Source: Bugula neritina
Taxonomy: Eukaryota; Animalia; Bryozoa
Assembly (NCBI GenBank): GCA_964035545.1
Contig: CAXIUT010000022.1
Location: 1 to 36,239, forward strand
Reading direction: 5' to 3'
Length of the DNA stretch: 36,239 nt
Position numbers and translations under genes: made by a program. Position 1 is the first letter of the stretch, and every line of letters starts with the position of its first letter. The notes under the pieces were generated by a model. That model searched no databases. It was not told the origin of the DNA and saw only the letters and a list, made by a program, of their open reading frames with translations. Below, one piece after another: positions 118 to 36,239 of this stretch.

Positions 118-124
118 TCTATTT

Positions 125-5047: not shown

Positions 5048-5816
5048 ATGTCATTCAATAATGAAAGTAGCAACAGTACACCATTTAATATAAAGCTTCA
5101 CCTTTTTCACTGATAAAATATGAAGCAGAAATAGAAATCAGTGATAATGTAGAATAATATGAAAAAGCTAAACATAATCAAAAAGTATTAGATTCAAAAC
5201 CCAGTCCTGAAGGTATCTATCTTCTCAAATAGATGTACTCAATAACATGATCATCCCCAGAGATTGGAAATCAAGTGATTCCAAACATTATATGCAGTAT
5301 GTCTCTCACCAAAAAGCATAAAGAGATGATGTTGTTCGCCTTAAAGATTCTCTTGATAAAGCTTTATAGCATAGACAAGCCAGAACTGAAGGAATCTGTC
5401 CAATTAGAGAAGAATTATTCAGTCAATCTTTTGATTAAATTGTTAGACAAGTCACTATTAACTGTCCAGAAAGAGGACTGCTTCTCATGAGAGTTAGAGA
5501 TTAACATAAAATGACCTTAGCAGCCTATCAGACACTCTATCAGTCTTCAGTCAGTTATGGTATGTTGAAGTTACAATAATCTGAAGAAGGAATGGAAGAA
5601 TTGAATGACTATTTAAGTCAATGTAAGGAAGAAAGAGATCAGCTTGATATAAAAAAGACTGAGCTGATATCTAAAAAAGAATCTTTATAGAAGAAAATAA
5701 AAGAGAGGATGGACCAATAGGCTTTGGAAAGATAGGAAAATTTGATTCAAATTCAAGAACAATAAGCAGCATTAGGAAAGTTTCTAAGTTCTTTAAAAGA
5801 GTCCAAACCAGAATGA
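5048..5816 (+). CDS. DNALI1: Axonemal inner-arm dynein light chain p28
   Basis: RQARTEGICPIREELFSQSFDEIVRQVTINCPERGLLLMRVRDEHKMTLAAYQTLYQSSVSYGM, the p28 signature. 20-nt introns at 5076-5095 and 5213-5232. Confidence 0.95.
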
Positions 5817-5887
5817 TTATGATTTTATAACAATTGATATTATTCCATATTCAAATGGTTTCTAAGGAATTTACTAAAGCAGACCTA

Positions 5888-8800
5888 TCAGTTTCTGAAT
5901 GGTGCCAGGCTCGATCTTCTCACATCCTCTACTTCTCTCTCCTTGTCTTTGACTCTTTTGCGTAGAGATTCAATCTCAGCGAATAATACAACAAACAAAG
6001 ATAAATGTTCTTGGATTCGTTTAACCAGGGCAGCTTCATCACTAAATCTTAGTTTGATTTCTCCTAAATCTTCTTCTTTCTGTTCAACTAAAACACTCAA
6101 ACGATCAATTTCTTCATTAAGTACTTTAATCTTCATTTTATGATAGTTACCTTGTCTTAAGTGAAAGTGCTTCCTTTAACTTTCATTTCAAGTTCATAGG
6201 TGGATTGTTTAAGCATTTGATTTTATCTTCTGAGTTCTTGAATAATATTGTTGAGTTTATCGAATTATGACGATATTTTAGTGAATCTATATAAATGATG
6301 ATGTACTTAGTTTCATATTCAAGAAGTTTCTTTTTAGTTCCTTCGTTTTCAGTTTAAGAGCTGTTTGAAACATTTCTTAATCTTTGAATTTAAGCAGATA
6401 AAAGAATTATCTTCTCTTCATAATCTTGGCATTTAACTTTAAATAAGAGAGTTTCTTCAATTTTCTTTTTCAAATCTTAATTTTCATTGCAAGTAATTTT
6501 GAGTTCATTTGTTAGCTTGTTGATAGTACCTGATGATAATCTAAGATTTTATTGAACTCCTCTCATTTCATCTCCAAGAGCTACATTTTCAGATGTTAAT
6601 TTCTTTATTTTAAGGATATATGTTTCAGAATCTTTATTGCTTTCAATCATTTTGTTTTTAAATTCATTGAGTTATCTTTGTAATTTAGATTGAGTAGCAC
6701 TTGATAGTCTCAAAGACTATTGAGCTACTTTAACTTCTTCTCCAAGATTCATATTTTATGAAGACAATCGATTAATCTTTCCTTTTAGCGATTCGTTTTC
6801 TTGATTATTTTGATCGATTCTTTGTTTATATTCATTGATTTATTTAATCATTTTTGCATTTTGATTAGCTGATAGTCTTAAGTTCTATTGAGCTGCTCTC
6901 ATTTCTTCTTCATTAGCATAATTTTCATTCACTACTTTCTTTATTTTCTCTTGAAGAGATCCAATTGTCCTATTCATCTCATCAATATCATGCATTTTTT
7001 TGTTTAATACTGAAACTTCTTGATTTTTCTTTTCTACTACTGAATTAAGCCTTTCAATCTATTGAGAGAACATAGCTATTTTAGATTAGTATTAAGCAAT
7101 CTTTGAAGCACTGTGATCTTGACTAGTTCTTCTTACTTATTCAATTTGATATCTAAATTCATTTACTTATGAAGTTAATTTGCCGATTTGATTCTTAGAT
7201 AATCTCAAGTTCTACTGATGTTATTGAACTTATCCTCCAAGAGCTCTAATCTCACTATTCTTCTTTTAAATGATAGAATTAAATCTTTGAGATTAATCAG
7301 TCATTACTTGGGCTTTATTTTCAGAATCAAGCTTTAATCTTTTCCAAGCATTTTCAGTTTATCCAAGCTTTCTTTTAGTTTAATCGAGTTCTCCACAAAC
7401 TCCTTTGAACTATGCTTGAAGTTTAGAAAGAGTACCAGCTGATAATCTGAGATTTTCTTGAGATGATCTAACTTATTCACCCAAAGCATTGTTTTCTCCT
7501 GTTAATTTTTGTATTTTTTGTTTGTAAGTATCGACTTCTTGAGTAGTTTGACCATATCTGGCTCTGAATTCATTGAGCTCTTGATTTAGTTTATTAGCTT
7601 GAGCAGAAGAGAGTCTGAGATTTTCTTGATATTATTGAACTTATCCTCCAAGAGCTCTGATTTAGTTGTTTCTTTTTTCAACTAAAGTATTAAGTCTTTG
7701 ACATTAATCAGTCATCATTTGCATTTTACCTTCTGTTTAAGATCGATTTCTTTTGTTATTATTTTATGACTCAAGTACTCTTCTCTTTAATTCTTCGTTT
7801 TAAGCACAAACTAGCTTGAATTCGTTTTGAAGTTTGCTCATTTGTCCTGCTGAAAGTCTTAAATTTTCTTGAGCGTTCCTTACTTCATCATTCAAAGAAG
7901 TGTTTTATGAAAGGAGTTTATTGATTCTTTGTTTGTATGTTTCTGAATCTTTGTTGTTAACATCAATTCTGTTTTTGTAGTCATTGAGTTAGGCATTAAG
8001 TTTACTCATTTGATTTGCTGATAATCTCAAGTTTTATTGGGCATTTCTGACTTCTTCATCAAGACCTGCATTTTCTTTCAAAAGATTGTTCATTTTTTGT
8101 TTTATTGCATTATTCTATTGTTAGTTAGAAGCAATTCTATTTTTATACTCATTGAGTTACTGCACTATCTTGGCGTTTTGATTAGCTGAAAGCCTCAAAT
8201 TCTACTGAGCTTTGTTCATTTCATCTCCCATTCCAGTATTTTCATGGACAAGTCTAGTAATTTTCTAGTTAAGATTTCCAATAGTCTTATTCATACTATC
8301 AATTTCTGCTAGCTTTTTATTTAGGTTTCCAAGTTCAATATTTTTCTTTTCAAGAACTCCATTTAATCTTTCGATTTCTTGAGAAAGAATAGCAACTCTG
8401 TTCTCATACTAAGGAACTCTTTTTCCAGCGATTTAGTCTAGTTTCTTTTTCAACTCTTAGTTGTCATGACAAGCTACCTTCAGCTCATTCTGTAACTTAC
8501 CCATAGTCCCTGCTGAAAGTCTTAAGTTTTCTTGTGCAGTTCTGATTTATTCTCCAAGAGCAGTGTTCTCACCAAGTAGTTTTTGAAGCCTTTGTTTATA
8601 GGTTTGTGTCTATTAGTTACTTTGACCAAGTCTGCTTTTGAACTCATTGATTTCAGAAGCCATCTTTGAAGTATGAGCACTTGATAGTCTCATAGCCTAT
8701 TCATGTTATTGAACTTGTCCTCCAAGAGCTCTGATTTCACTGTTCTTTTTTTCTGTTATCGAGTTAAGTCTTTCACACTCCTGAGTTAGAATTTTGATTC

Positions 8801-11800
8801 TGTTTTCGGATTCAGATCCAACTCTCTTTAGTTGATTTTCAAGTTCTTGAATTCTTTTCTTAAACTCTTCATTCTGAGAAGCCATACTCTCATATTCTCC
8901 TCTAAGACGACCTATCTGTCCAGTAGAAAGTCTGAGATTTTATTGAGAAGTTCTCACTTATTATCCAAGACTTGAAGTTTAAGCAAGTAGTTTTTGAATT
9001 CTATTCTTGTAAGCTTCAGATTATTGAGTAGTATTTCCAAGTCTATTTTTATATTCATTGATTTCATTTGATAGTTTAGTAGTTTGAGCAGAAGAAAGTC
9101 TCAAACTCTCTTGATATTATTGAACCTAACCTCCAAGAGCTCTAATCTCATTATTTCTCTTCTAAACTAATCCATTAAGTCTTTCACACTACTGACTCAA
9201 TAAAGCGATCTTACTCTAATGTTAGGCTTTAAGTCTTTTCCAAGCATTTTCAGTCTATCCAAGTTTTCTTTTGGTTTCATCAAGTTCACCACACACTCCT
9301 TTGAATTATCCTTGAAGTTTGTTTAAAGTTCCAGCTGAGAGTCTAAGATTTTCTTGAGATGATCGAACTTACTCACCCAAAGCAGTATTTTAACCAGTTA
9401 ACTTTTGGATTCTTTGTTTATAAGTATCAACTTATTGAGTACTTTGTCCATATCTAGACCTATATTCATTGAGTTAGTTTGATAGTTTAGTAGCTTGAGC
9501 TGCTGATAGTCTTAAGTTTTCTTGATATTCTTGAACTTAACCTCCTAACGATCTGATTTAATTATTTCTCTTCTAAACTAATGTGTTGAGTCTTTCACAC
9601 TCTTGAGCTAACATTGCAATTCTTTCTTCACTTTCAGCTTTCAATCTTTTCCAAGCATTTTCAGTTTATCCAAGCTTTCTTTTAGTTTAATCGAGTTCTC
9701 CACAAACTCCTTTGAACTATGCTTGAAGTTTAGAAAGAGTACCAGCTGATAATCTGAGATTTTCTTGAGATGATCTAACTTATTCACCCAAAGCATTGTT
9801 TTCTCCTGTTAATTTTTGTATTTTTTGTTTGTAAGTATCGACTTCTTGAGTAGTTTGACCATATCTGGCTCTGAATTCATTGAGCTCTTGATTTAGTTTA
9901 TTAGCTTGAGCAGAAGAGAGTCTGAGATTTTCTTGATATTATTGAACTTATCCTCCAAGAGCTCTGATTTAGTTGTTTCTTTTTTCAACTAAAGTATTAA
10001 GTCTTTGACATTAATCAGTCATCATTTGCATTTTACCTTCTGTTTAAGATCGATTTCTTTTGTTATTATTTTATGACTCAAGTACTCTTCTCTTTAATTC
10101 TTCGTTTTAAGCACAAACTAGCTTGAATTCGTTTTGAAGTTTGCTCATTTGTCCTGCTGAAAGTCTTAAATTTTCTTGAGCGTTCCTTACTTCATCATTC
10201 AAAGAAGTGTTTTATGAAAGGAGTTTATTGATTCTTTGTTTGTATGTTTCTGAATCTTTGTTGTTAACATCAATTCTGTTTTTGTAGTCATTGAGTTAGG
10301 CATTAAGTTTACTCATTTGATTTGCTGATAATCTCAAGTTTTATTGGGCATTTCTGACTTCTTCATCAAGACCTGCATTTTCTTTCAAAAGATTGTTCAT
10401 TTTTTGTTTTATTGCATTATTCTATTGTTAGTTAGAAGCAATTCTATTTTTATACTCATTGAGTTACTGCACTATCTTGGCGTTTTGATTAGCTGAAAGC
10501 CTCAAATTCTACTGAGCTTTGTTCATTTCATCTCCCATTCCAGTATTTTCATGGACAAGTCTAGTAATTTTCTAGTTAAGATTTCCAATAGTCTTATTCA
10601 TACTATCAATTTCTGCTAGCTTTTTATTTAGGTTTCCAAGTTCAATATTTTTCTTTTCAAGAACTCCATTTAATCTTTCGATTTCTTGAGAAAGAATAGC
10701 AACTCTGTTCTCATACTAAGGAACTCTTTTTCCAGCGATTTAGTCTAGTTTCTTTTTCAACTCTTAGTTGTCATGACAAGCTACCTTCAGCTCATTCTGT
10801 AACTTACCCATAGTCCCTGCTGAAAGTCTTAAGTTTTCTTGTGCAGTTCTGATTTATTCTCCAAGAGCAGTGTTCTCACCAAGTAGTTTTTGAAGCCTTT
10901 GTTTATAGGTTTGTGTCTATTAGTTACTTTGACCAAGTCTGCTTTTGAACTCATTGATTTCAGAAGCCATCTTTGAAGTATGAGCACTTGATAGTCTCAT
11001 AGCCTATTCATGTTATTGAACTTGTCCTCCAAGAGCTCTGATTTCACTGTTCTTTTTTTCTGTTATCGAGTTAAGTCTTTCACACTCCTGAGTTAGAATT
11101 TTGATTCTGTTTTCGGATTCAGATCCAACTCTCTTTAGTTGATTTTCAAGTTCTTGAATTCTTTTCTTAAACTCTTCATTCTGAGAAGCCATACTCTCAT
11201 ATTCTCCTCTAAGACGACCTATCTGTCCAGTAGAAAGTCTGAGATTTTATTGAGAAGTTCTCACTTATTATCCAAGACTTGAAGTTTAAGCAAGTAGTTT
11301 TTGAATTCTATTCTTGTAAGCTTCAGATTATTGAGTAGTATTTCCAAGTCTATTTTTATATTCATTGATTTCATTTGATAGTTTAGTAGTTTGAGCAGAA
11401 GAAAGTCTCAAACTCTCTTGATATTATTGAACCTAACCTCCAAGAGCTCTAATCTCATTATTTCTCTTCTAAACTAATCCATTAAGTCTTTCACACTACT
11501 GACTCAATAAAGCGATCTTACTCTAATGTTAGGCTTTAAGTCTTTTCCAAGCATTTTCAGTCTATCCAAGTTTTCTTTTGGTTTCATCAAGTTCACCACA
11601 CACTCCTTTGAATTATCCTTGAAGTTTGTTTAAAGTTCCAGCTGAGAGTCTAAGATTTTCTTGAGATGATCGAACTTACTCACCCAAAGCAGTATTTTAA
11701 CCAGTTAACTTTTGGATTCTTTGTTTATAAGTATCAACTTATTGAGTACTTTGTCCATATCTAGACCTATATTCATTGAGTTAGTTTGATAGTTTAGTAG

Positions 11801-14800
11801 CTTGAGCTGCTGATAGTCTTAAGTTTTCTTGATATTCTTGAACTTAACCTCCTAACGATCTGATTTAATTATTTCTCTTCTAAACTAATGTGTTGAGTCT
11901 TTCACACTCTTGAGCTAACATTGCAATTCTTTCTTCACTTTCAGCTTTCAATCTTTTCCAAGCATTTTCAGTTTATCCAAGCTTTCTTTTAGTTTAATCG
12001 AGTTCTCCACAGACACCTTTGAATTATCCTTGAAGTTTGTTTAAAGTTCCAGCTGATAGTCTAAGATTTTCTTGAGATGTTCTGACCTATTATCCTAAGG
12101 CTGTATTTTATCCCATCAGTTTCTGAATTCTCTGTTTGTAGGTATCGACTTCTTGAGTAGTTTGACCATATCTGGCTCTGAATTCATTGAGCTCTTGATT
12201 TAGTTTATTAGCTTGAGCAGAAGAGAGTCTTAAGTTTTCTTGATATTCTTGAACTTATCCTCCAAGTGATCTGATTTAATTATTTTTCTTTTCTATCAAT
12301 GAATTAAGTCTTTCACACTACTGACTCAATAAAGCGATCTTACTCTAATGTTAGGCTTTAAGTCTTTTCCAAGCATTTTCAGTCTACCCAAGCTTATTTT
12401 TGGTTTCATCAAGTTCACCACACACTCCTTTGAATTATCCTTGAAGTTTGTTTAAAGTTCCAGCTGATAGTCTCAGATTTTCTTGAGAAGTTCTTACTTA
12501 TTATCCTAAAGCAGAATTCTCGCCCATAAGTTTCTGTATTCTTTGCTTGTAGGTATCAGCTTATTGAGTACTTTGTCCATATCTAGACCTATATTCATTG
12601 AGTTAGTTTGATAGTTTAGTAGCTTGAGCTGCTGATAGTCTTAAGTTTTCTTGGTATTCTTGAACTTAACCTCCTAAAGATCTTATTTAATTATTTCTTT
12701 TTTCTACCAATGAGTTTAGTCTTTAGCATTATTGAGCAAGCATTGCAATTCTATCTTCATTTTCTGCTTTAAGTCTTTTCCAAGCATTTTCAGTTTATCC
12801 AAGTTTTCTTTTAGTCTAGTCAAGCTATACACAGACACCTTTGAATTATCCTTGAAGTTTGTTTAAAGTTCCAGCAGATAATCTGAGATTCTCTTGAGAT
12901 GTTCTAACTTATTATCCTAAAGCTGTATTTTATCCCATCAGTTTCTGAATTCTCTGTTTGTAGGTATCAACTTCTTGAGTAGTTTGACCATATCTGGCTC
13001 TGAATTCATTGAGCTCTTGATTTAGTTTATTAGCTTGAGCAGAAGAGAGTCTTAAGTTTTCTTGATATTCTTGAACTTATCCTCCAAGTGATCTGATTTA
13101 ATTATTTTTCTTTTCTATCAATGAATTAAGTCTTTCACACTACTGACTCAATAAAGCGATCTTACTCTAATGTTAGGCTTTAAGTCTTTTCCAAGCATTT
13201 TCAGTCTACCCAAGCTTATTTTTGGTTTCATCAAGTTCACCACACACTCCTTTGAATTATCCTTGAAGTTTGTTTAAAGTTCCAGCTGATAGTCTGAGAT
13301 TCTCTTGAGAAGTTCTTACTTATTATCCTAAAGCAGAATTCTCGCCCATAAGTTTCTGTATTCTTTGCTTGTAGGTATCAGCTTATTGAGTACTTTGTCC
13401 ATATCTAGACCTATATTCATTGAGTTAGTTTGATAACTTAGTAGCTTGAGCTGCTGATAGTCTTAAGTTTTCTTGGTATTCTTGAACTTAACCTCCTAAA
13501 GATCTTATTTAATTATTTCTTTTTTCTACCAATGAGTTTAGTCTTTAGCATTATTGAGCAAGCATTGCAATTCTTTCTTCATTTTCTGCTTTAAGTCTTT
13601 TCCAAGCATTTTCAGTTTATCCAAGTTTTCTTTTAGTCTAGTCAAGCTATCCACAGACACCTTTGAATTATCCTTGAAGTTTGTTTAAAGTTCCAGCAGA
13701 TAATCTGAGATTCTCTTGAGATGTTCTGACCTATTAACCTAAAGCAGAATTCTCACCCATAAGCTTTTGTATTCTTTGCTTATATGTGTCAGCTTCTTGA
13801 GAAGTTTGTCCATATCTTGATCTATATTAGTTGAGTTAATTTGAAAATTTGGTAACTTGTGCAGAGGAAAGTCTTAAGTTTTCTTGATATTCTTGAACCT
13901 ATCCTCCTAAAGATCTGATCTCGTTATTTTTCTTTTCTATTAATGAATTTAATCTTTCACACTACTGACTCAGTAAAGCGATCTTACTTTAGTTTTCAGA
14001 TCTATATCTTTTCCAAGCATTTTCAGTCTACCCGAGCCTGCTTTTAGTTTAATCAAGTTCACCACAAACTCCTTTGAATTATCCTTGAAGTTTGTTTAAA
14101 GTTCCAGCTGATAGTCTGAGATTCTCTTGAGAAGTTCTTACTTATTAGCCTAAAGCAGAATTCTCGCCCATAAGTTTCTGTATTCTTTGCTTATATGTGT
14201 CAGCTTATTGAGTACTTTGTCCATATCTTGATCTAAATTCATTGAGTTAGTTTGAAAGTTTCGTAGCCTGGGCAGAGGAGAGTCTTAAGTTTTATTGATA
14301 TTATTGAACTTATCCTCCTAAAGATCTTATTTAATTATTTCTTTTTTCTACCAATAAATTAAGTCTTTGACATTAATCAGTCATCATTTACATTTTTCCT
14401 TCTGTTTCAAATTTATATTTTTTAAAGGCCATTTAAATTTAAGTTTTTAATCTTTTTGATTAATCAAGTTCTCCACTGAAATTTCTGATTTAATCATTTG
14501 AAAGTCTTATTTTTTATTGCCCATTTCTTAACTCTGATTGTAATTCTTTATTTTATTCTATGGAATTTCTTAATTTTTAGCTTAGATTTTTCAATTGTCT
14601 TCCAGCAGTTTATCCTTCAACACTTTTCTCTTGTAGAGATTGAATTTATCTATTTTTATTTACAATAATATTATTAAGTCTTTCAATTTATCTTGTAGCT
14701 ATTTCAACTTTATATTCTAATTAATTAGCTTTAATAGCAGTTTACCCTAATTCTGCAATTTTTCTTTTTATATTTTAATTTTATAATCTTAGACTGTTTT

Positions 14801-15444
14801 AAGTTGAATATTTAATTTCTTCAATTTATCTATTTTTTGCTCTATCTAATGCTTCAAATTTAGCTTTCCAAGTGCTGATATCACTTATGGATTGATTAAG
14901 TTAATTTTTTAAGTCAGTGTTATCTTTATGCATATTTTCAATTTGTTTTAAAGCTTTATGATATTTAGCTTGAACATTAGAATCAATTTCAGATACCTTT
15001 TGTTTGTAATCTTCTAATTCAAAAGTTTGTTTTTGAATGAATCTTTTTAGTTTGTCATTTTCCTTTCTTGAACTCTATCCTTCAAAAGCCTTCTAGGTAA
15101 GTTCCTTTATTTGAATTTAATAACTGTGTCTATCCAAATCTTTTTTTGAAATCTCTTTGAGTCTAAATATCAAAATATATACCTTAACTTATAATCATCA
15201 AGGTTATCAACCAGTCTTTCAATTTAAGCTGCTTGAAGAAGACACACAAGTTCCATATGCTCACCCATAAAAGTTGTGCTTTATCCAGGAAGACGGGCAA
15301 TCATGGATCTTAATGGAATCATAATTACTTTCTGATATCGTAAGGATCCCCGGGCTCAATGGTGTTCCAAGCGTTTTCTCTCTTGGGGATGGTAGCAGAT
15401 AATAGGCCTGTACTCTGATTCTTGTTGTACTGATCAAAGCTCAT
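5888..15444 (-). CDS. Giant (~3158 aa) repetitive coiled-coil protein resembling ciliate cortical/epiplasmic (EPC1-like) proteins
   Basis: ATG at 15444 to TGA at 5888. Removing four 20-nt introns (15309-15328, 15163-15182, 6287-6306, 6131-6150) leaves 9477 nt, a whole number of codons. Recurrent motifs are (K/R)IA(L/M)L(S/A)QE(C/I)ERLN and QENLRLS. Confidence 0.85.
7336..12010. repeat. 2307-bp direct tandem duplication (769 codons) inside the giant CDS
   Basis: The anchor aatcttttccaagcattttcagtttatccaagctttc recurs at 7336, 9643 and 11950. The two copies look identical on inspection. Confidence 0.92.
12010..14400. repeat. 411-bp (137-aa) tandem units forming an 822-bp higher-order dimer repeat
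   Basis: agtcttttccaagc at 12361 and 12772 (411 apart); gaattaagtc at 12301 and 13123 (822 apart). Confidence 0.9.
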
Positions 15445-15548
15445 ATCCTACAATCAATTAAAACAATATGAATCAATATTTTTTATTTGAATTTATGGAT
15501 TAAAAAAAATACGGTAACCAAATTCCATAGACTCCTTGATTGAAATAA

Positions 15549-17167
15549 TCAAGTAAAAAAATTCATAAATATTTATTAACTCATTTTCAGAGTATTTAAA
15601 AGTTATTTTATTTTTTTGAATCATACTCATGAATTTATATGTTTTTCAGCTTTATTTTTCTTTTTTATTTGGATCAATTCAGCTAAAAGATCCTCATCTT
15701 AGTCAGATTATGAATTTTATACTTATTTTTTTGGTTAAACCTTTTTTCTTTGATTTAGCTGATTGCTTATTTTAGATAGAAGTCCTTTTGCACTTTAAAT
15801 TTGCATTTATTTGACAACTTCTTTCTTTTTTTATGGCTATATTTATTCTTATTTTTTCTCTGAAAGTTCATATCTATTTTTTGGCTCTTAGATTATTTTC
15901 TAGGGAGTATAAGAATGATTATCTTGACTTCTACTTGAACTTGATGAATTTCTTTTTGATTTACTTAAGCTTTTATGCTTATGTTTTTTCTTTTTCTTCT
16001 CTTTTTTATCTTTCTTCTACTTTTTATCTTTTTTATCTTTTTTATCTTTTTTCTTTTTCTTTTTGGAATGATTTCTTGATTTATCACTTTTATTTTCCTC
16101 TTATTCTTTAATTTGCATTTGATCAACAGGTTTCTAGTCATTTTAATCAAGCATAGTCTATATAGCTATAACTTTTTTCTTTCTAAGTTCTAGGTTTCTA
16201 TCAAGCATGATTTTTCTATAATAATTTACAGGAAATACATTGACAAGGTCATGTTTATCTCCTATCTAATTGATATGTGAAGCAACTATCTCCAAAGTAT
16301 ACTTTGATGTTTTCGAAAGATCATAAAAAGATGACAGCTATCCAACCAATTCTTCAATATTCTAAATATTTGCTTCTAAGAGAACCCACCAAGGTGCAGT
16401 AGGCATTTTGATATTCAATTTTAAAAGTGACATATAAACTGAAGCAGAAGCAATAATTTGCCCAGGATAGTGTAAACAGACATTAGTTTTGTAGAAATCG
16501 TTGAGATAAGTCCATGCTTTTTGACATATTTTTTTGCATTGAGGATGTCTTTCAAATGATTTGAATAGTCCTCCGATATATCGATGAGGAATATCAAAGA
16601 TACGGTATATTTCGAATCCTAACTCAAAAAGAATCCGTTTCTCTTGCTATAAAACTTTATTTCGCATGTATTAGTATTAATTTGAGTGCAAAATTTGAAT
16701 TTTAATGGGCATTTTTTGTCCTTCAAATATCTACATAATAAGAAAGTTACTTTAAAGATATAATCAAAAACAGCTGATATTTAGAATGATTTTCTTAAAG
16801 TTTATTCTGATTTACAAGCCAGAAAAACAGCTCCCATAGCAATATCTCTAAAATCACATTCTAAATATGAAACTCTTGAATAAAAGAAATGACCTATCGA
16901 TGCTGCAACGATAGATGTAGAGACAGGCAATTTTAGTGATTAGCAAGCTTTGAATATAATTTAACTCATTAGATATCCACAGCATTTTTCTTGTTAAATT
17001 GAAAATCCATCTAGTTGTGATGGACTAGGTGCAAATCTATCGACGAGAAAGTTTTAGTTAGTTTAGTTTGGAGAGTAGATAAACTTTTTAGTGAAATTAT
17101 CTTTGGTGATTCCAACTTCTGTTTCTGCCTGGACAAACTTAGTTCTGAACTCTTATTATTTAATCAT
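15549..17167 (-). CDS. Cyclin L-like transcription/splicing cyclin with a charged low-complexity tail
   Basis: PSPSQLDGFSIEQE...LKLPVSTSIVAASIGHFFYSRVSY...AMGAVFLACKSEETLRK...EKRILFELGFEIY...IPHRY. Intron at 16731-16750. K/E/R-rich C-terminus. Apparent indel near 16650. Confidence 0.85.
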
Positions 17168-17222
17168 ATCGAATGATTGTAAAAGATTAATATATTATCG
17201 ATATTGTTAGGGGAACATGCTT

Positions 17223-17876
17223 ATGTAAAAGTCTCTTAGCTCTGAAAATAGTGTATATGAAAGTAGATATAATTGTATTATCTGTCTTGAAAGAGTTAAA
17301 ATGCCTGTAAGTTGTATCAGATGTAATAAAATTCTGTGTCTTCAGCATGTCAAAAAGATAGATAACAAGTGTCCTTTCTGTAGGTTATCACCTTTCCAAT
17401 ATAAATAAGATAAATTTCTTTAAGAATTAGTTAAATTAGATAGAAAAAAACAGGAATAACATTAAATATCAACTAAAGTATTTAAATGTTTAGTTGAAGG
17501 GTGTAAATTTGAAGGAAGGTTTCATAAAATGGATCTTCATCGACGCAGATAACACCGCAACTAGAACCTAAGAGAGATCTTATTTGAATAAGAGCGGGAA
17601 AACGCCAAAAAGGTTAGAGCTGTAGAGGCATTAATGAAAAAACTTCAAGGAAGATTCTAGAAAAATAACAAATCTTATCAAATTGCTTTGATTTTACGAA
17701 GTAAGTGTGATAAGATGGAGACTAGAGCTCTCTACTAGATGGTATAACATTGTTAGCACTGTCGAAATAAAGATTGTGTTAGGGTTTATACTTAGTAGAC
17801 CATGTGTTTTATTGGAAACGAAGCTAAGGAGTTGTCGGATTGTCCTGAGGCACAAAAGTATATTACATTCTTTTGA
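17223..17876 (+). CDS. RING-finger protein followed by a zinc-finger-like motif (217 aa)
   Basis: CIICLERVKMPVSCIRCNKILCLQHVKKIDNKCPFCR, then CLVEGCKFEGRFHKMDLHRRREH. Open from ATG to TGA with TAR=Glu. Confidence 0.8.
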
Positions 17877-17991
17877 TGCTCAGAGAAAGTGATCATCTCA
17901 TTCTCTTATATTTAAACAATAAAATTAAATTAAAAATAATGCAAATTAAAATATCATAATTATTCTTAAAAGAAAAAATTGATAAAAATAT

Positions 17992-18040
17992 TTGGGGTTG
18001 GGGTTGGGGTTGGGGTTGGGGTTGGGGTTGGGGTTGGGTT
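17992..18040 (+). repeat. Interstitial telomeric tract 1, (TTGGGG)7 TTGGG, intergenic
   Basis: Read directly. Lies between the RING and PARP genes, with the G-strand on +. Confidence 0.97.
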
Positions 18041-18120
18041 TTTATGATTAAAAAACTATATTAAATCTCAATATTTAGCAAATTACTTTAATATTAGTTC
18101 GCATATAATATTGAGAGACA

Positions 18121-21100
18121 ATGTAGAAAGATCTTCCTAAAAAGAAAAAGAAATACGTTCTTGCAACCAATCAATCTCAATCAATTCCTCAAGACAAATC
18201 TCAACAATTCATACAAGATAAAAATGAAGAAAAACCACTAAAGAGGACTAACTTTAACTATTCTTTCGAATAGATCATTAACCTTATTTTGGCAAGGTTG
18301 ATACCTGATAGTAAATTTCCAATAAAATTGGATTAAAAGCTGATATTAGGAGAAGCTAAAGAATTGGATATCTTTATTTCTAAATTAGATGATAATTTGA
18401 CCAATTTTATAGGATTTACTTTGGATTTAAGTGAAAACATAAGTAAAGATGATATAGATTATAAAATGGATTAATCTTTTAAAGCAAAGCTATTTAGTTA
18501 TAAGTCGATCTAGATGTTTGTTAAAAACTATTTTGAGGGGACTTAGTATTAAAGAGATTATCTTGCCTTTTTGGATAAATTTAAAGGATAAGATAAAAAT
18601 AGAATATATGTTAGACTTATAAGAAGTTGTTTTGATTAATTTGCTTAATCTATTGATGGAATGGCTGTTGTCTAGGATTAGGAACTTAAACCTAAAAAAA
18701 GGAGAGGAAATCGAACTGTTTTCAAAAAATAAATAGATAGTATTACTTTGTCATCATAGTATATTACTATCAAAGATATTAGTAAGTTTTTTAGTAAAAG
18801 TAATAAAATGGATTTTCGAGATTTAGTTATCGACAAAAAGAAAGAATATGGAAAAGTATAAAGTTACAGGATAGCTTTGATGAGTTTCTAAGCAGATTCT
18901 TAGATAAAACTATAAGCATTTAACTATTACTTCAGACATGACAACTATATAAACCTTCCACTGAAAGAAACTAAAGGAAAACAAAAAATATGTGAAGAAT
19001 ATGGTAGTATAAACTAGTCCCATATCAAAACAAAGCTATTGAAAGGATATAAATCATCAAAATGGGATGATAAGGATATGATATACAAAATAAGAAATAA
19101 AAAAATAACTGCTAAAAAAACTAACTATACTAATTAATACTTCTAGGCTATACATCTCAGAGGAGTACTGCCGATAGTTCGATAGCATATATAGTAGTTG
19201 TAGAATTTGATTAATGAGATGCCATTGGATGATATTAAGACTGAATTATATGTCGATTTCGATGAGAAGATAAAAGATTATATTCGCAATAATAAAGAGG
19301 TATAAAAGTTTATATAAAAATTCATAAGAAAGTATTTGAAGTAGTATAGTGAGATTTTTGAAATATAGAAGATAAAATTTCCATTGAGAGCAGTAAAATT
19401 GAATCTTTCGATAAAGACCAACCAGGAAATCGAATTTAAGTAGATCTAGAAGAACATAACAGCGATTATGCCTAAATATATAGCATAGCAGAAGATAATA
19501 ACAAATTTTATAATAGATGATTAGTTTTTGGATAAATTGTAGGAAAATGATATTCTTGTGGTCGATAGTAAGGAGAAGGAGTTGATATATTTGACTAGTA
19601 CGTAGGAATTGAGTATTTGTGCGGGTATTATTCAAAAAATAATCCAGGAGTTTTAAATGATTGGAGAGCAGTCGATTTAAGTGGTTGGGTTGACTAGAAA
19701 AATGAAGTATTATTAGATTATTCATTAAATTAGAAAATAGAATGAGGAATATAATAAGTTGTTTATTGCTGAACCTACTACATAAGACAAAGTACATTAT
19801 AAGATAACTTTTTATGGTCCTAGAAAGAAAAATGATAAATTTTTATAATAAATAAAAAAAGCTATCCAAAAATTATAAAAATAAACAGGATAGTATTCCT
19901 AACACATAAGCTAGAAGATATCAAAAATAATAATATAAGATCAAACTCTCCAACAAAAAATATAAGACCAATTCAAGATATCTCTGATCAATGGTAGTAC
20001 TAAAATCGATGCCAGATTATAGCTATGCCATAAGAAGAAAAGCTAAATATTGATAGTGAAGGGAAATGGTTTGAATAGCTTTCCTGTAAACAGTTGTGTA
20101 TATTTGAGTGAGAAGAATGTTGTTTAGGGATTGAAATAGAAGTATATGTAGAAGATGAAAATAATGGTAAAAAGATTTAAACAAAATAAGTGGCTGGAAT
20201 AGAATTAGAAAACTAGAGGTTATCTATTTCTTTTTAAATAAAATTATTCAATTGAATAGATGCTAGAATAATCTGTTAAAAGAGTTGATAATTAGATTTG
20301 TCGGGTAGGATTGTTTATGCCGACAAAAGATAAACAAAATTGGATTAGAAAGTTGTTGGATTTGTTGGAAAATAAAAAATAATATTCTTTGTATATTTTT
20401 CAAATTTATATCATCTAGATTACTCCCTAAACAGATATAGAAGCAATAGTTGGTATTCCGCAATACAGATCTTTTACTAGTAATAATCCATAGACTCAAA
20501 TTGAGATCGAATGGGTGTGTGAAGGATCACCTTATTCTAAAAAAGCTAATAATAAGATAAATGATGCAATGGCTAATCGATTGGATGAAGTTATGTTGGA
20601 TAAAGATGATTTTGATGTTAATTCTAGAGTGGCAACTACACATACTCATGTTTGTAGTTTGATTCAGAGAACGATTACTTATCGATCTAAGAAAGGATCG
20701 ATGGTTGATGTTCCTTTTAAGATAGGTATGGGTTAGATATCTTTTACTTATAAAAATTATAATATTAAATTTCCTCAATCTGAGTATAATAAAGTGCTTT
20801 ATCATCAGAGAATTAGTCTTCAACATAGATTTTATCTTAATTTACCGTATTATATCATTAATTTGAAAAAATCCACTCAAATCAATCTTTTTACTGAATA
20901 TGAGCGTCCGATATCTCGAATATAAAGGACAATAACTCTAGAAAAGAACTACTAAGGTCATATCAAGGCATATTATTTAGAAACAACTCCTCAGTTGATA
21001 TATCATTTTTAGTAAAGCAATGCTAAAAATTTACAACCAGCGATAAAAGAGGTAAAAAATTATCTATAATCAAAATGGTTAAAATAGAAAATTGCTATAA

Positions 21101-21912
21101 AATAGATTTAAAATAATTAATTTAGAAGCATTCTTAAGTAAAGATTATAAACTATGGCACAAGAGTATTCATTATAGTATGATTTAGAGCCTAATATGAG
21201 AAGTATTACTGTATAAACTTTTTAACAAAAAGATATTGATAGTTTTAGAAGTTTTATTTAAAATTAGATTGGATATTTGGTTAAATTGAGTTAGAGAGCC
21301 ATAAATCATACTGTTCATTAATAATTTAAATATCCTTAATCATGGCAGCCACAAAATAATTAAATATAAACTTTTTAGGTTCCAAGACAAAGTAATTAAT
21401 TCAAAAATGTTCAACTTAAATTTGGTTCTATTAGACAAATAGTATCAATAGTTAGAATACAAAATAAGCCTTTATATAAAAAATATCAAGATTAGCTTCA
21501 ACATCTTTCACATTTTAATGGAAAACAAACTAAATAACTTTAACTTTTTCACGGAACAGGTAAAACTCCCAGTTAAATTATCTGGTCTAATAAATAAGAT
21601 GGGTTCAATATCAACTATTCTAGTGATTCTAATCTACTTGGTCGAGGAGTCTACTTTGCTTAAAAATCATAATATTCTTATGGATACGCATCAAAAGAGG
21701 GAAATATCAAGGTGATGTTACTTTGTTTGGTTATTGTGGGAGATAGTCAAGAGATGAAAATGACTCCAAGTAACAAATAAGTGAAAGATACTAGCTTTAA
21801 GTCCAATGGAATAAGATATTAATCAATGCTAGGTAAACATTCTGTCTGTGATATATATGTGGTTTACAAGAATAGAAGAGCCTATCCTGAATACCTTATC
21901 AAGTTTGTATGA
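18121..21912 (+). CDS. Multidomain WWE-PARP, probable mono-ADP-ribosyltransferase (1263 aa, no intron needed)
   Basis: Continuous frame. C-terminal PARP motifs PESW...IVRIQN...LFHGT...GFNINYS...GRGVYFA...MLLCLVIVG...IYVVYKNRRAYPEYLIKF. WWE-like YIINLKKSTQINLFTEYERPISR near 20850-20920. Confidence 0.88.
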
Positions 21913-24212: not shown

Positions 24213-27062
24213 ATGAAAATCTTACTTACAGCACTACTCTTACTCACTCTAGTCTCATCCCAAGTAATTGGTATTGATTTTGGAACTGAGTTCTGGAAGG
24301 CATCACTCATCTCCCCAGGTAAAAATCTTGTAATTGTTTAAAATTCAAGATCAGGAAGAAAAAGTAATAATGGTGTAAATATTTTATCATTTAGATTGCC
24401 TTTCTAGATGGAATTAGACACTTCTAGTACGATGCCCTTATGAAAAGACAAAAAAAACCTAAAATTAGTTACTTCTATCTCAACAAACTTATCTAATCAT
24501 TGGATAGTGAAAAACCAATCGAAGGGTATCACTTCTAAAACGGCACATATCATTTCCAAATTGGTTAAGATAACGTCTGTCTTGAACAATTGGTTGGTAT
24601 GATCCTCAAAAATATAAAAAAATACAGTTCAGAACAGGCTAATTCAGATATAAAGGATTCAGTTTTGACTGTACCAGCACATTGGGGTTTCAAATCAAGA
24701 TTTGCGTTGATAAATGCTGCTCAACTGGCTGATTTGAGTGTCCTTGGGCTGATAAATGAGAATAGTGGAGCTGCTATACATTATGCGATTACTCGAAATG
24801 ACAGTGATCCAGTGAATATTGGCTTCTTTAATATGGGTAGTCATAATCTTCAAATATCGATTGTCCAATTTTATGGAACACTTGATCCGATTCGTTAAAA
24901 AAATATCTAAAGTATGAGAGTGTTATCTCATATATCATTGCCTAACGTTGGAGGACTTCAATTTGACCATCTTCTTGCCTAGTATATAGCTGCATAATTT
25001 AAAAAGAAGCATAAAATAGATGCGCATGACAACTTGAAGGCTTGGACTAAATTATTGCATAAATGTTCTGATTTGAAGTAGACATTGTCTGCGAATAAAG
25101 AGGCTAATGTTTATATTTAGGGATTTATTGATGGAATTGATCTCAATGTTGCTGTCAAGAGATAGATATTGGAGCAATCTGATATTTTTGGTAAATTGGG
25201 TGAGTATTTACAAATGGCTCTTGATAAAGCTGGAGTGACTAAGGATTAAATTCAATCTGTTGAGGTTATTGGAGGTGGTAGTCGTGTGCCTTTGATATCT
25301 AAAATGCTAAAAGATTATTTTGAGCCGGTAGAGGTGGGATCTCATATAAATGGTGATGAGTCGATGGCCTTTGGTGCTGCATTAAGGGCAGCTAATTTGA
25401 GTATTGCCTTTCGAGTGAAGCAACTTCATTTTTATGATGGTTATCCTGATCAAGTTCGAGTAGTTTTGACTAATATTGATGATGGAGTTATCAATTCTAG
25501 TGATCTTTTTGATCGGGATAGTGAACATGGGTTGAAAAAATAAATAGTAGTTGATCAGAATGAAGGAGATGTTAAAGCTGCTGTATATTATGGAGAAGAA
25601 ATAGTGCAAGAATATTTGATTGCTAATTTGTCTCAATGGTAAAATAAATATAATCGATCTTAGGTTAATTTTACTTAATAGCCTAAACTTGTTTTGGTAT
25701 TTAGTGCACATTCGATTAACTTTGCAGAATTGAAGGAAGCGTATATTAATATTACGCTTAATACTACTACGACTAGGGAAGTTTATGAACTTGTGGTTTA
25801 GAATGTTACTATTGAAGATAGTGAGTAAAAGAAAGAAGAAACTTAAAAAGAATAAAAGAAAGAATAAAAGAAAGAAGAAGAGAAAAAATAAGAAGAAAAG
25901 AAAGAAGAAAAGAAAGAAGAAGAGAAAGAAGAAGAAAAGAAATAAGATGAATAAAATAAATCAGGATAGGAGAAAGAATTAAATAAATAAGGTTAGTAAG
26001 ATAAGAACAAATAAGATGAGTCAAATAAAGATAAATAAGATGAGTCAAAAAAAAGCAAATAAGAAGATTCAAACAAAGGCAAAAAGAAAACAAGAGAAAG
26101 AACCAGAAACGTGAAGAAAATGGTTGAATAATCAAAGATATAGAACAAAAAATCTCACATAAAAGCAAATCATACTTATTCCAAGTATCACAGGTACACA
26201 AAAGATGAAACTGATACTCTTAAAGAGATCATTAGAAAATATTAAAAGCATTAAAATTACTTAAAATAGAAAGCAAAAGTCAGAAATGATTTTGAATCAA
26301 CACTCTACACTTTAAAAGAGGATTTCTAACATCCAGGATTTAAAACTTTTAGCAAAGAAGAAGAAATAGAGGCACTTAAAACAGCAGTAGTTGAAGAGAT
26401 AGCTTGGCTTGATGAGAATGCATGGACAGCTGAGAAGAACTAGTTTGAAGATCATTATTATAACATACAAAAAATATATTCGCCTATTGTCAACCGTTCT
26501 AGAGAGTACAATGAAAGGTAATATATCAGTTATGTAGATAACAGTACTATAATAAAACTATCGAGATATTGTCTTTGGTCTATGGAAAGACTAATTAACT
26601 GAATACAACTCATGAGTGGGTTTCGGATAAGGCTGTAGCTCATCTAAAGAAGATAAATGATACAGTTGATTAAATCAGAGCTTAGTTGAAAAAACAGATT
26701 GATAGAAAACTCAATGAAGACATTATCTTCTATGTACAAAGTTGTTTATTAAGAACCAATAAATGATCGATCGGGCTGAAAAATTAAGAGATGAATACTA
26801 TCTTATCAAGATGATACCAAGACCAAAGACAGTTAAAAAGCAAGAAACTCCAAAGCAAGAATCTAATGCTGATGAGACAGCTGACCTGGATGATGATGAG
26901 ACAGATAAAGAGAATAAAGAAGATTAGAACAATGGATAAACAGAAGAGGAAGCTACTGAATAAAAAGTAGAGGAAGAAGTTCCTGATAATGAATCTGAAG
27001 GAGAGAAGGTTGAAGATCAATAAGAAGAAATATAACAATAGGAAAGTAAGTCAGATTTATGA
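24213..27062 (+). CDS. HYOU1: ER-luminal Hsp70-family nucleotide-exchange chaperone GRP170/HYOU1/Lhs1 (929 aa)
   Basis: Signal peptide MKILLTALLLLTLVSS, then VIGIDFGTEFWK, VLTVPAHW, LINENSGAAIHYA, VEVIGGGSRVP, INGDESMAFGAALRAANLS, an EEKK-rich insert and C-terminal KSDL. Introns at 24375-24394, 26518-26537 and 26734-26753. Confidence 0.92.
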
Positions 27063-27205
27063 TAATGATGTCAAATATTATGAATGGTTGATGATATAAT
27101 AGTATGAAGGAGTATTAATCTATAATTATAGTTCATCATAAATATTATTTTTATTTTTTATATAAATTATAATATAGTTTAATAAAACAGGCAGGTTAAA
27201 TTATA

Positions 27206-28975
27206 ATGTAAAATAATTAAGAAATCATAGTTACCATTTAAGACCTTTAATAACTTTAATAGACATCACAAAACATAAAATTTGCTGTCTATCTCTCCTC
27301 AAATACTCGATACAACCTAAAAAGTATTTAAAAATAACTTTTAGCTCAAGATACATATTGTCTACCTCTTATACCACTCAGAAGAACAGCTTGTTTTCAT
27401 TGTTTAACAAAAAACTATTCATGTTAATAATGTAAGTACTGCATTCAATAAGGAAAAGCATGTTGTAGAAATATTGGTTGTATTTATGATTTTAACTTGT
27501 ACAAAAATTAAAAAAAAAATAAGATTTATTAGAAATGTTCATGTATTGAACCATATGAACCATCGAGTACCAACTTCGATATTGATTGGAGATTGTGTGA
27601 GTTGTTAAGTAAAATAAATCGAACTGATAGAATGAAATATAGTTATTATCTTGAATATTTTTATGGAATATTGAAAATAAGAGAGGAAATGATCAATAAA
27701 GATGGGTAAATAGTTATCAATAGAGTTATATTTTAATAAAATTTCGATGAAAATCAATAGATTGAAACTTAAAGTTAAATGATATTTTAGAATAGGGGTT
27801 GGGGTTGGGGTTGGGGTTGGGGTTGGGGTTGGGGTTGGGGTTGGGGTTGGGGTTGGGGTTGGGGTTGGGGTTGGGAGTCAACTTGTCATGAAGTAATAGA
27901 TCATTTTTCTTCTCATAAAGGTTTAAAATAAATAAAATCAAAACTATAATAATAACCTTCCTAAAATGAATATTATCTTTAATAAAAAAACAATCCTTTA
28001 CCTAATATGATTAATATCATTGAGGCATCAGTTTAGGTGGATTAGAATATATTTAATCACTTCAGTAAGGCAGTAAATTAAAGAATTATCTTTCAGTATC
28101 ATCATTAATCAGAAAAAATAGTCATCAAAAATGCTAGTTATTAAAAAGAATAAACAAAGCATGGTTTAAAATTTTATTCAATAACTAAAAGTAAATAAGA
28201 ATATAAATTTGATAAAGCCTTTTGGTTTGTAGATAGAAAAGGAGATCTTTTCGTTATTCATGATGAAATAATATCGATATTCAAATACCATTTAAAGATG
28301 AAAAAGTTCAAACAGATCTAAATTAAACAAGATAAACGTCTTTCTCGAATTAATAGTGAATCAGCAGTTGTTTATATTAAATAGATTGATAGAATATACT
28401 ATTTTGATCCATAAAATGATGAAAAATCTTTTTGCTTTGATCTTTATCGACCTTATCGAGAACAAAAATAATACTCAAACTGCCTATCAGCTAACTCGAT
28501 TAGATAGCTTTAACCAATATAGAAAATAGTGATGAAATGTTCAAGTTATAAAGCTACTTATATGATGGAGAAGAACAAGTAAAATATCGAAATACCAGTG
28601 ATATATTTATTGAGTTAGAGATAAAATAACTTGCCTTTGCCTTTTTGTTTAGATAGAGTTATTCATAAGTAAGGAAGTAAGGTGGAAGTTCAATAGATTC
28701 GTTCGAAAAAATGTTAGTTTTAAGATAAAAAAGTAAAAATAGAGTTTATTGATGGAATATTTATAGCTATAAAAAAAAAGAAAGAGTCAGTTGTTTGTTT
28801 TTATACAAAATTTAATGAATAAATGGCCTTAATTTAGGGAACTATCAAAGAAAATGGATTTAACACTTTTGTTTAATGGAACTTATCTTAAAGATCTTTT
28901 GATATTTAAAAATAATATAAGATGTTTAAATCTCTTCATTGGGATAAAAATAAACAGATTTTAATTGAATCATGA
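27206..28975 (+). CDS. Cys-rich (possibly SP-RING/MIZ-like) protein containing an in-frame telomeric tract encoding (GW)13
   Basis: 1770 nt from ATG to TGA with no internal TGA. N-terminus has QDTYCLPLIPLRRTACFHCL...KCSC...FDIDWRLCELL. The junction reads ...MIFENR(GW)13ESTCHEVIDHF... Confidence 0.7.
27795..27875 (+). repeat. Interstitial telomeric tract 2, (GGGGTT)13 GGG, intragenic
   Basis: Read directly. Flanks are ...tagaata and agtcaac... Confidence 0.97.
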
Positions 28976-32199: not shown

Positions 32200-32919
32200 T
32201 CATAGGTGAATGGTGTGATATTGAGGGTGGTTATTGACTTCGTAGAGGTTTAATCCCATTGATGTAGCAAATTAACTTCTTTTCATTAACATCTGTTCTT
32301 TAATTCTCTTGCTATCGGCACGTTTCTTCATGCATTTGAAAACCAAAATGATTCCAACAACTAAAGTTACAACTGAAGCTATCACCATTGATAACCAAAT
32401 ACCTTCCATCAATTCTTCAAATTCTTGGTCACCTTTTCCATGATGTTTTTTTCCTGAATAGCCTTTATTGTGGCCACTATAATAATCACCAGAGCCATAG
32501 TAACCTGAACCACTTTTATAACCATTACTATAGTAACCTGAGCCTCTATAGCCAGAACTATAATAACCTGAACCGCTCCAAAAATCAGAACCAGACCCAG
32601 AATAGCCACTTCCACTATAGCCTGATCCTGAATAGCCACTACCACTATAACCTGATCCTTAGTAACCGCTACCGCTATAACCTGAACCGGATTCTTAGTA
32701 ACCACTTCCGCTATAGCCTGATCCTGAAGAACCGCTACCACTATATCCTGATCCTGAATAACCGCTACCACTATAACCTGATCCTGAACCTTAATAACCG
32801 CTACCGCTATAACCTGAACCTGATCCTTAGTAACCACTGCCGCTATAGCCTGAGCCACTATTTTGAGAGCTGGCTAATAGAATCAATGCGAATAGGAGTA
32901 TGAATTTTAATGTCCTCAT
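32200..32919 (-). CDS. Type-I membrane protein with a signal peptide and (SGSGY)n ectodomain (239 aa)
   Basis: MRTLKFILLFALILLASS, then SGSGYSGSGYEGSGSGYSGSGY..., then TM GIWLSMVIASVVTLVVGIILVF, then basic KCMKKR. Confidence 0.85.
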
Positions 32920-32992
32920 TAAATAATTAATTATAGAAACATTTAAATTGATAGTAATATGACAATAATCAGAAAGATAATATTTTTTATGA

Positions 32993-35335
32993 TCAAATCC
33001 GGCCATCATCCGAAACAATATCTTCATCATAAGCATAATCCTTATGCTAAATTGGTTGTTAAGCTGCAAGCATATACTGACCCATCTTATCTTACAGCTA
33101 TTATGATGGTTTTCTTGTGTTCTTGCTTTTCTTGACACGACTTGTATTTTTACGTGATTCTTCACTTTCTTCACCTTGTTCTTCAATGGCTTCATTCTCG
33201 TAATCTTCTTCTTCTTCGATATAAAAACGCTAAAAAAAGCCATGGAAGTTCAGATGTTGAAGATCGTCTGAGCAAAGTGATAACTCAGCAATTATGAGTT
33301 AGATATACACTTTCTAGAGCTCTAAATCTTCGAACATTTTGATAAGTTTTTCTTTTTAGACTGTATCTTATCCATTTTTGACATTTTCAAAGGAAGTTTC
33401 CAACTCATAAGGGTATTTACGAGTCATTTCTGCGATACACATAATCATCTATTTTTATTATTCTTCAGGTATCAGTTAGAAATCATCAACTACTTTCTTT
33501 AACTTACTAATGAGTTTTGAGCTCTAAAGCATTTAATTTTGATCTAATGAATCTTTTTCATAGCAATAGCATAGGAAACTCTTTGTATAATTAGAAGTCA
33601 AATAAAAGGGCTAGTTAACCAGCATATTACAAAGATCAGCGTAAGAGAAAGTTGAAGATTAAGCTGATTATATATCTGTTTTTAAATCTTCAAAAGGATA
33701 TCTTTGAGCTTTCATTCTATAAGTCAGTAATTCCTTTATTTATGCTAGTATCTTTTTATCAGGTTTATAACCTTTATTTGTATTCTTTTCTTTCTTTTTC
33801 TTTTTGTCTTTATCTGTTTTCTTATTTTTACGGTCGTGTGATTCTTTGTTATAAAGTTCTTCTTCTTATTAGTTTTACTAGAAATCTTGTTTTAACTTTT
33901 AGATTTGTTAATCTTGTTTGACTATTTGTTTTTTTGGAGATTTTGTTGCTGCAGAGACATCCTAACTCTTTTAGAATTATTGTTAGTAACTATTTTATTC
34001 ATTTTCAAAAGCATTGTTATATGATTCTTCTTCTTTGGAAGGACTATCTTCAAAATCATATTTCTTTTATAATTTTGATGATTCAGATTTATTTTTAACT
34101 GACTATATTTCGAGTTTATTTTTCACAGATTTTTATTAAACCTTTTACATCTTTTATTTAACAATATTTTAATTTTTTTGCTGAATTTTTCTTCTACTAA
34201 GCTCATTTTCTGATTTTTATAATTGAAGTTTAACTGATTGAAGCTATTTTTAAAGTACTTAATTCTTTTGTCTAATTTACTTGGTTTAAAGATCAATAGG
34301 AGCAACATTCAATGTATTCTAATTTGATTTTTGAATATTAGATCGATAGTAATTAGTACTTGGATGCGATGAAGCAGGTCTTACTACAGGTTTAGCTGAC
34401 TTCTTTTTCATATTTATTTGTTAGACATTAGTTTATAGTGCTTTTATTTATCTTTTTAAGTTTTAGATATGTCTGAGTTGATCATTATTTTTTCTTTTTT
34501 AGACAGCAAGATCTCTAACAACTTTTTTTTCTTTATTATGATACTTTTAAGATTAACTTTTGATTTTATCTTATAAACTTTCTACGATTTCTTGATATTT
34601 TTAATTTTCTTAAGCAAGTTCTTTATTTTGTTATATTTATTCTTCTAAATATTTCTTTAATTAATTATTTTACTTCTCTAGCTAATCTTGATTTATTAAT
34701 TGACTATTACAATCTTAAAGTAATAATCCAAGTCGTTTATTTTAACCTAATAAAATTTTCTTCTATATTTATAATTCATTTATCTTGGTATATTTTACTG
34801 TTTTCTTTATTTTTTGATTTTATTGTTTAAGGTAGTCATTTTAATCTTTAGTCTATCTTACTATCTTCTTCAAATTGTGGATAATCATATTTTCTTTCTA
34901 TTTTAAAATATTTAGTACGTCTTGGTTTTTTGATCCATAAATATTGATACGACTGTTTCCTTGCTTACTCATGCCATCAGATCCAGAATCCATGTATCTG
35001 TTCATCTTGTCTTTTTACTTCTAAAGAATAGATATCTTGGTTTTCAGTCGCATGTTATCTTCCATCAACTAGTTAACTGTTTGTTTTAACTGTAAAGTTT
35101 CAGAGTAGAGTCTTTCTTTATCTTGATGGATCTTCTTTGGCATAATACGGGCAAAGTCATGAGTAGTCAGATCTGGTTTCATGATTTTTATTTGCTTACG
35201 ATGACCTGCCTTGCTAGAAACACTCTGATCACCTATCTCGTCTGAACTCGCCTGTCCCCAATAACCCTTATAACCTGGTTTGGCTGACTGTGGTCTTGAT
35301 AAATCTACTTTTACCTCTTCATTTTCCCTGTTTTA
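32993..35335 (-). CDS. IQCE-like coiled-coil protein with a degenerate EF-hand-like C-terminus; start unresolved
   Basis: DKERLYSETLQLKQTVNELMEDNMRLKTKISILEKEK...NLKKIVRETKDENDYLKQENQKIKKTVKYTKINELEIEKK resembles the IQCE coiled coil. Probable 21-nt intron at 34898-34918. Confidence 0.6.
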
Positions 35336-36145: not shown

Positions 36146-36239
36146 GGGGTTGGGGTTGGGGTTGGGGTTGGGGTTGGGGTTGGGGTTGGGGTTGGGGTTG
36201 GGGTTGGGGTTGGGGTTGGGGTTGGGGTTGGGGTTGGGG
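36146..36239 (+). repeat. Right telomere, (GGGGTT)n
   Basis: Perfect G4T2 tandem to the end of the window. Confidence 0.98.

Follow-up and report, generated by a model that had tools for sequence, protein, structure and literature searches.

In the macronucleus of Blepharisma stoltei, telomeres are found at a very large number of internal positions, known as alternative telomere addition sites (ATAS); as a rule, a minority of the chromosome copies is affected (PMC9942806). In the current study, we characterized an internal telomere tract within a gene of another ciliate, and the reading that we favor resembles the Blepharisma case in that telomere-bearing molecules end inside longer macronuclear chromosomes. 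The ATAS of Blepharisma, however, are telomere-bearing reads mapped on contigs, whereas the telomere described here lies within the contig sequence. Macronuclear chromosomes of Paramecium also show telomere healing and neotelomeres (PMC13076228). The likeness lies in somatic breakage with de novo telomeres, in and between genes, that is tolerated by virtue of a polyploid macronucleus. In contrast to the present case, where single precise positions and almost pure G4T2 were found, chromosome ends in Paramecium are scattered over kilobases and combine G4T2 with G3T3 repeats. In the spirotrichs Oxytricha and Stylonychia, internal telomere repeats within two-telomere macronuclear contigs are extremely rare, being confined to 36-39 contigs (PMC7285179). 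Alternative fragmentation in spirotrichs recalls the present case in its nested chromosome forms with one common end and in the occasional internal repeats of assembled two-telomere contigs, but the ciliate studied here has hundreds of tracts in its ~300 contigs, and these are strongly biased in direction. Vertebrates, in turn, carry short interstitial telomeric sequences inserted by telomerase during break repair, as Nergadze et al. reportedly described in 2004 and 2007. There, too, perfect repeats are inserted exactly between adjacent bases, with microhomology at the site. Vertebrate interstitial sequences nevertheless belong to the germline, are inherited, occur in both polarities and are found on every molecule, a pattern that the uniform, contig-tied polarity observed here does not fit.

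The window (the whole stretch of DNA analyzed, 36,239 nt) is one contig of a host assembly of 216 Mb in 321 contigs, nine of which (C1-C9) measure 10-36 Mb. HSP70 genes on these nine large contigs contain no in-frame stops, whereas those on small contigs, including the window, contain many in-frame TAA/TAG codons. Many such codons are likewise present in the Cys-rich gene that holds the tract and in the neighboring genes for V-ATPase subunit d, an HSP70-family protein and a coiled-coil protein, which fits the ciliate code. The small contigs start with C4A2, while five of the nine large contigs start with long C4A3 (TTTGGGG-type) arrays; that of C6, the one array followed to such a length, extends for ~10 kb. 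Because of its telomere caps, the contrast in genetic code with the large contigs and the C4A2 starts, we conclude that the window represents an entire macronuclear chromosome, derived from a ciliate cobiont (TAA/TAG = Gln, G4T2 telomeres) in the host assembly. The small ciliate contigs number ~300 and together amount to roughly 16 Mb. C12, C13, and C17 appear to be of bacterial origin. The host part uses the standard code and carries multi-exon as well as tandem intronless HSP70 genes on the nine 10-36 Mb contigs. A Tetrahymena germline assembly had been suspected from the C4A3 ends and was rejected, since the chromosome breakage sequence (Cbs) is not enriched and the large contigs use the standard code. 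Cbs is a 15-nt motif, WAAACCAACCYCNHW, that directs chromosome breakage in Tetrahymena and lies close to the breakage sites in germline DNA (PMC13368176). It occurs 0 times in the window and 35 times in the assembly vs. 68 for the control; a macronuclear genome would, however, be devoid of Cbs in any case, and the assembly contains no germline sequence from a ciliate. Near-identical DNA of the window chromosome was also seen in runs under three organism labels from three studies (shares 0.94, 0.54, and 0.29), and this ciliate apparently accompanies several of the hosts or cultures that have been sequenced.

Table 1. Positions of telomeric and coding features in the window.
Feature	Position	Strand	Description
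Left terminal telomere	1-117	.	C4A2 repeats with two variant units; contig begins 5'-CCCAACCCC
First internal G4T2 tract	17994-18041	+	~8 units; same polarity as the tract at 27795-27875
TGA-free frame, Cys-rich protein of no known family	27095-28975	+	627 codons in the ciliate code; candidate start ATG 27206
Conserved N-terminal part	27338-27706	+	C-x2-C-x6-C-x2-C-x2-C-x6-CC cluster, then FxIDWRL...YYL...EExIxKDG; 44% identical to the homologue (L020) over 149 aa
Internal telomere tract	27795-27875	+	81 nt, 13.5 GGGGTT units; starts GGGG, ends TTGGG
9-mer GAGTCAACT (codons E-S-T)	27875-27883	+	Unique in the window; identical and in frame in L020
Right terminal telomere	36146-36239	+	G4T2 x15.7

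The original prediction, made from the letters of the window, described a telomeric repeat inserted in frame within a gene. The tract was indeed found as described (Table 1), and TRF reported GGGGTT x13 + GGG as 100% perfect. It is flanked by ...TTTTAGAATA on the left and by AGTCAACTTGTCATG... / AGTCAACTTG... on the right, and matches of the GGGGTTGGGGTT type number 50 in the window vs. 0.02 expected from shuffles. The native sequence would be AATAGGGAGTC, and since the GGG of the tract is common to both, the net extra DNA in the contig is 78 nt rather than 81. Removal of these 78 nt yields AATAGGGAGTCA, as had been claimed. The G4T2 strand is the + strand after the left flank, and the identical repeat caps both contig ends. 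As at an alternative telomere addition site, the ciliate's own repeat abuts unique sequence, with its G strand running 5' to 3' away from the retained body, and the tract resembles true chromosome ends in its length, its start and its end phase. The first internal tract of the window lies between two TGA-delimited frames, 16893-17876 (+) and 18115-21912 (+), 118 nt after the TGA of the former, and looks like an ordinary chromosome end 3' of a gene.

The frame that spans the 27795-27875 tract reads ...FQNR(GW)13ESTCHE... and, with TGA as the only stop, is open over 627 codons, from 27095 to the TGA at 28973-28975; it includes the ATG at 27206 and runs through the tract, in agreement with the original prediction. 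Given a TGA frequency of 0.027 per position, the chance of an open frame of this length is ~3e-8. A tract that starts with GGGG and ends with GGG is 6n+3 long and thus divisible by 3. Because telomere phase alone gives this length, in-frame insertion is the default and is no evidence of coding selection. GW is, moreover, one of three possible readings of the repeat. On the reading of the tract that we favor (see below), (GW)13 exists as a conceptual translation only, and Gly-Trp residues encoded by the tract are probably absent from any real protein. An SP-RING-like character had been proposed for the Cys-rich part, yet neither SP-RING/zf-MIZ nor any other family was matched at E <= 1 when the Cys-rich 74 aa and three other pieces were scanned against Pfam, apart from a sub-threshold chance hit. 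The run search found no RNA runs containing the locus, three exact small ORF products near the junction returned nothing on record, and the assembly contains neither a paralogue of the Cys-rich gene nor a second copy of the region, which is single-copy.

Whether the two flanks belong together natively was addressed by comparison with a homologue. Among 1.8 billion representatives, the 58-aa piece left of the tract has one relative, P0001 (E 6.8e-8), which is encoded on L020, a metagenome scaffold of 532 nt. Read in the ciliate code, L020 aligns with the window frame at the identity given in Table 1 (tblastn E 2e-44, in a small database of our own) and crosses the equivalent point uninterrupted (...QIYE-ESTLEES...), with no GW there. 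The 9-mer GAGTCAACT begins at the last G of the tract, where native sequence and homology resume, and occupies the matching place in L020. Since the protein tail alone was not significant against shuffles in the L020 comparison, the case for adjacency is carried by the 9-mer, its position and its frame; by our own estimate, the chance that all three agree is about 1e-3 or less. The claim that the flanks are natively contiguous is thereby upheld: L020 is colinear with the window and shares the 9-mer exactly at the right junction. The repeats are perfect and lie between natively adjacent bases, as would be expected of a break-repair insert. It is also conceivable that the tract replaces an equal length of native sequence instead of being a pure insertion, but this would be less parsimonious; it is disfavored at 27795-27875 by L020, and a second gene, on contig C231, weighs against it as well, its start codon being out of frame with its FAD domain. 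Scans of JGI metagenomes with the right flank and a two-sequence profile gave no further relative, and relatives reached via the neighboring HSP70-family gene (L041-L051) were not syntenic and had neither the Cys-rich gene nor telomere tracts.

The tract is not special to the gene at 27095-28975. We counted distal junctions over the whole assembly, on both strands, as three GGGGTT units plus GGG followed by A or C and then 12 bases, and found 140 internal junctions in forward and 19 in reverse orientation (controls 8 and 2). These represent at least 159 internal junctions from one junction class alone. Polarity was uniform, without any reverse tract, in the six contigs examined (the window, C10, C11, and C14 whole; C15 and C231 in part). 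Each of C10, C11, C14, C15, and C231 carries several internal G4T2 tracts, of one polarity per contig, and all four of them seen from the first base have a C4A2 left end. Internal tracts are 48-94 nt long vs. 56-117 nt for terminal ones; all 11 internal tracts examined start with GGGG, and 7 of the 11 end in TTGGG (two being read as GGG followed by t) vs. 12 of 16 terminal tracts. Because length, start and end phase agree, the internal tracts look like copies of physical chromosome ends. On non-telomeric ends, Tetrahymena telomerase reportedly adds GGGG first by default (work of Wang and Blackburn from 1997). From our reading of the ORF map, most internal sites lie at or between gene ends, and the 27795 site lies inside a gene. 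Similar tracts are found in unrelated genes and in intergenic DNA, and no conserved sequence was seen beside the tracts examined.

The direction bias bears directly on how the tracts came to be in the contigs. Real inserts in randomly oriented contigs would be expected to show polarities at a ratio of about 1:1, and the polarity of a break-repair insert should not depend on contig direction, whereas 140 forward and 19 reverse junctions were counted. Because an assembler ignores telomere polarity, a tract that points along the contig direction is the mark of a directional layout step. Two further contigs are informative. At 26730-27017 of C15, exactly 200 N separate an internal tract from the unique sequence behind it, which looks like a scaffold join after a telomere end; sequence does, therefore, get placed after telomere ends. 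On C231, the only SDHA gene of the ciliate (18120-19485; L052, L053) is interrupted by a 94-nt tract 7 codons past its ATG, so that, in the assembled sequence, the FAD domain is not in frame with the start codon, and there is no later start. Intact SDHA copies must therefore exist in the cell. In the same gene, two HMM segments adjoin at 18664/18670 but are offset by 5 nt; a tiny intron or a frameshift could account for this. We also looked for four sampled right-junction words in runs, as represented by simplified contigs, from which minority variants can be lost. The run with 94% of the words of the region was unlisted and the other run of the same study contained two of the four words, as did runs under seven other organism codes (D-I) in the same four-word sample. 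These two words are probably the nearly pure telomere words.

The data show the tract and the open frame, flanks that are contiguous, and a genome-wide pattern with a direction bias. We favor, at a probability of roughly 0.65, the reading that 27795-27875 marks a real alternative telomere addition site within the gene, used in part of the macronuclear copies and written as an insertion by the contig layout. The original prediction had offered, as its second option, somatic cutting of the gene and telomere capping in some of the macronuclear copies, and it is this option that our evidence favors. We infer the existence of two chromosome forms and of a layout step that combined them. The chromosome would be broken at ...AATAGGG (27794/27797) in part of the polyploid macronuclear copies, and telomerase would heal the break with a de novo telomere of ~80 nt, giving a form 1-27875 with a truncated gene, whose transcripts would meet no stop codon before the telomere. 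The remaining copies would be intact to 36239 and would encode the normal protein without GW, and 1-18041 may be another, shorter form ending 3' of a gene. During assembly, the layout would take a short-form read to its physical end, telomere included, and would then append a long-form read from the point where the alignment had stopped, leaving the telomere as a 78-nt insertion between native neighbors. With such a step, the insertion should be pure, the telomere should be complete and show the terminal end phase, and the right flank should start from the native next base; all three were observed. Few or no molecules or transcripts would then carry the left flank, the tract and the right flank together. 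Suffix-labeled string graphs (FALCON/IPA type) behave in the manner proposed. By our own reasoning, prefix-type layouts (miniasm/hifiasm) would drop the 3' overhang, or would write the opposite polarity while replacing sequence; if an assembler of this type made the contig, its behavior would count against the favored reading. The uninterrupted junction AATAGGGAGTC is absent from the assembly, and we count this against the favored reading as well.

The most serious competitor is a real interstitial insert, in which a break or nick at ...AATAGGG would have been extended by telomerase (GTTGGG x13) and rejoined via GGG microhomology, so that the gene could encode (GW)13. We consider it unlikely, though clearly worth weighing, and attach the same low expectation to its corollary that a substantial share of the molecules carries flank, tract and flank. 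The exact adjacency of the flanks suits such an event, as does the native GGG, an ideal telomerase primer that would also supply the microhomology for rejoining; the tract lies in a gapless contig, its 78 extra nt preserve the frame, and, by our own reasoning, a prefix-type string-graph assembler should need tract-containing reads in order to write a forward pure insertion. Breaks on either strand, or random contig orientation, would nevertheless not produce a polarity that tracks contig direction at 140:19 and is uniform within each of six contigs. Nor do tracts of full telomere length with the terminal end phase, or a single-copy SDHA gene frame-shifted by one of them, agree well with real inserts, and the perfection of the repeats speaks against an old heritable one. 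The junction words point the same way, at most two of the four sampled being present in any listed run, as in unrelated organisms, although four words make this a weak observation. The broader version, in which telomere-length G4T2 inserts occur on real molecules at hundreds of sites including genes, with some genes translated through (GW)n, appears somewhat more doubtful still. Only if the insert is real could the idea apply that telomerase-made DNA gave the Cys-rich protein a GW/WG hook for Argonaute. GW/WG motifs do bind Argonaute/Piwi proteins, and this knowledge, together with the conceptual translation, is what speaks for a functional novelty. L020, however, has no GW at the site, although a hook protein of the GW182, Wag1p, CnjBp, and Nowa1 class would be expected to show GW/WG motifs in relatives and to be expressed. 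The in-frame reading follows telomere phase and GW is one of three readings, no RNA run with the locus and no Pfam or SP-RING match was found in the searches described above, and similar tracts lie in unrelated genes and intergenic DNA. We regard the hook as extremely improbable, and this part of the original prediction is not supported: the tract is a perfect copy of a chromosome end, of telomere length, and one of at least 159 junctions that track contig direction.

The contig could also be a chimera, whether unrelated chromosomes were fused or separate small ones (A, B, and C) were joined end to end, and three telomere-ended segments do follow one another in the window, while C15 demonstrates that sequence can be placed after a telomere. 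Segments B and C, however, are without C4A2 left ends, one TGA-free frame crosses the junction, and the region is single-copy in the assembly. L020, colinear across the junction and sharing the 9-mer unique in the window, shows the flanks to be natively adjacent, so that we do not take the window for a chimera and give this explanation very little weight. A germline (micronuclear) interstitial telomere-like tract seems scarcely credible. Internal telomeric tracts are known in ciliate germlines, and telomere-like tracts lie at the ends of transposon-like elements in the germlines of Tetrahymena or Oxytricha. Against a germline origin, the contig has telomere caps, is dense in genes with long intact frames and shows nothing that resembles eliminated sequences, and the repeats are perfect and telomere-length, with no conserved sequence seen beside them.

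If the favored reading is true, an in-gene telomere tract in ciliate macronuclear assemblies, cobiont contigs included, can be a product of contig layout, and such tracts are not to be translated or annotated as coding novelty. The chromosomes of the ciliate are small (5-100 kb), and its alternative telomere addition sites, each at a precise position, seem to number in the hundreds; some of them lie in essential genes, which would be tolerable only in a polyploid somatic nucleus. Conversely, if molecules with flank, tract and flank were real, they would be the first case, on a large scale, in which telomerase has filled junctions within the genes of a ciliate.

Several other features of the ciliate contigs were observed. 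At 18552-18660 of C14 (L016), a tRNA-like gene starts 1 nt after an internal telomere tract, with acceptor stem GACACTG/CAGTGTC, a GCCGAGCGGTTAAGGC D arm, a long variable arm, a probable intron and a TTTTT terminator; ARAGORN called no tRNA in the window or C14 and left L016 uncalled. Within the window, a Gly/Ser/Tyr-rich repeat protein at 32200-33250 (-) is built of GSGYS units, with DNA periods of 30-96 nt and no Pfam match. A purine-rich AAG-type repeat (Lys/Glu-rich) at 25826-26090 lies inside the HSP70-family (Grp170/HYOU1-like) gene at 24290-26602. Finally, a 9-kb TGA-free frame, 6183-15194 (-), encodes a giant protein of coiled-coil type, whose tandem repeats of 411 nt (137 aa) are ~80% alike; the repeats lie at 9050-10010 and 11236-14372, and pieces of the protein match Rootletin-like coiled-coil families weakly.
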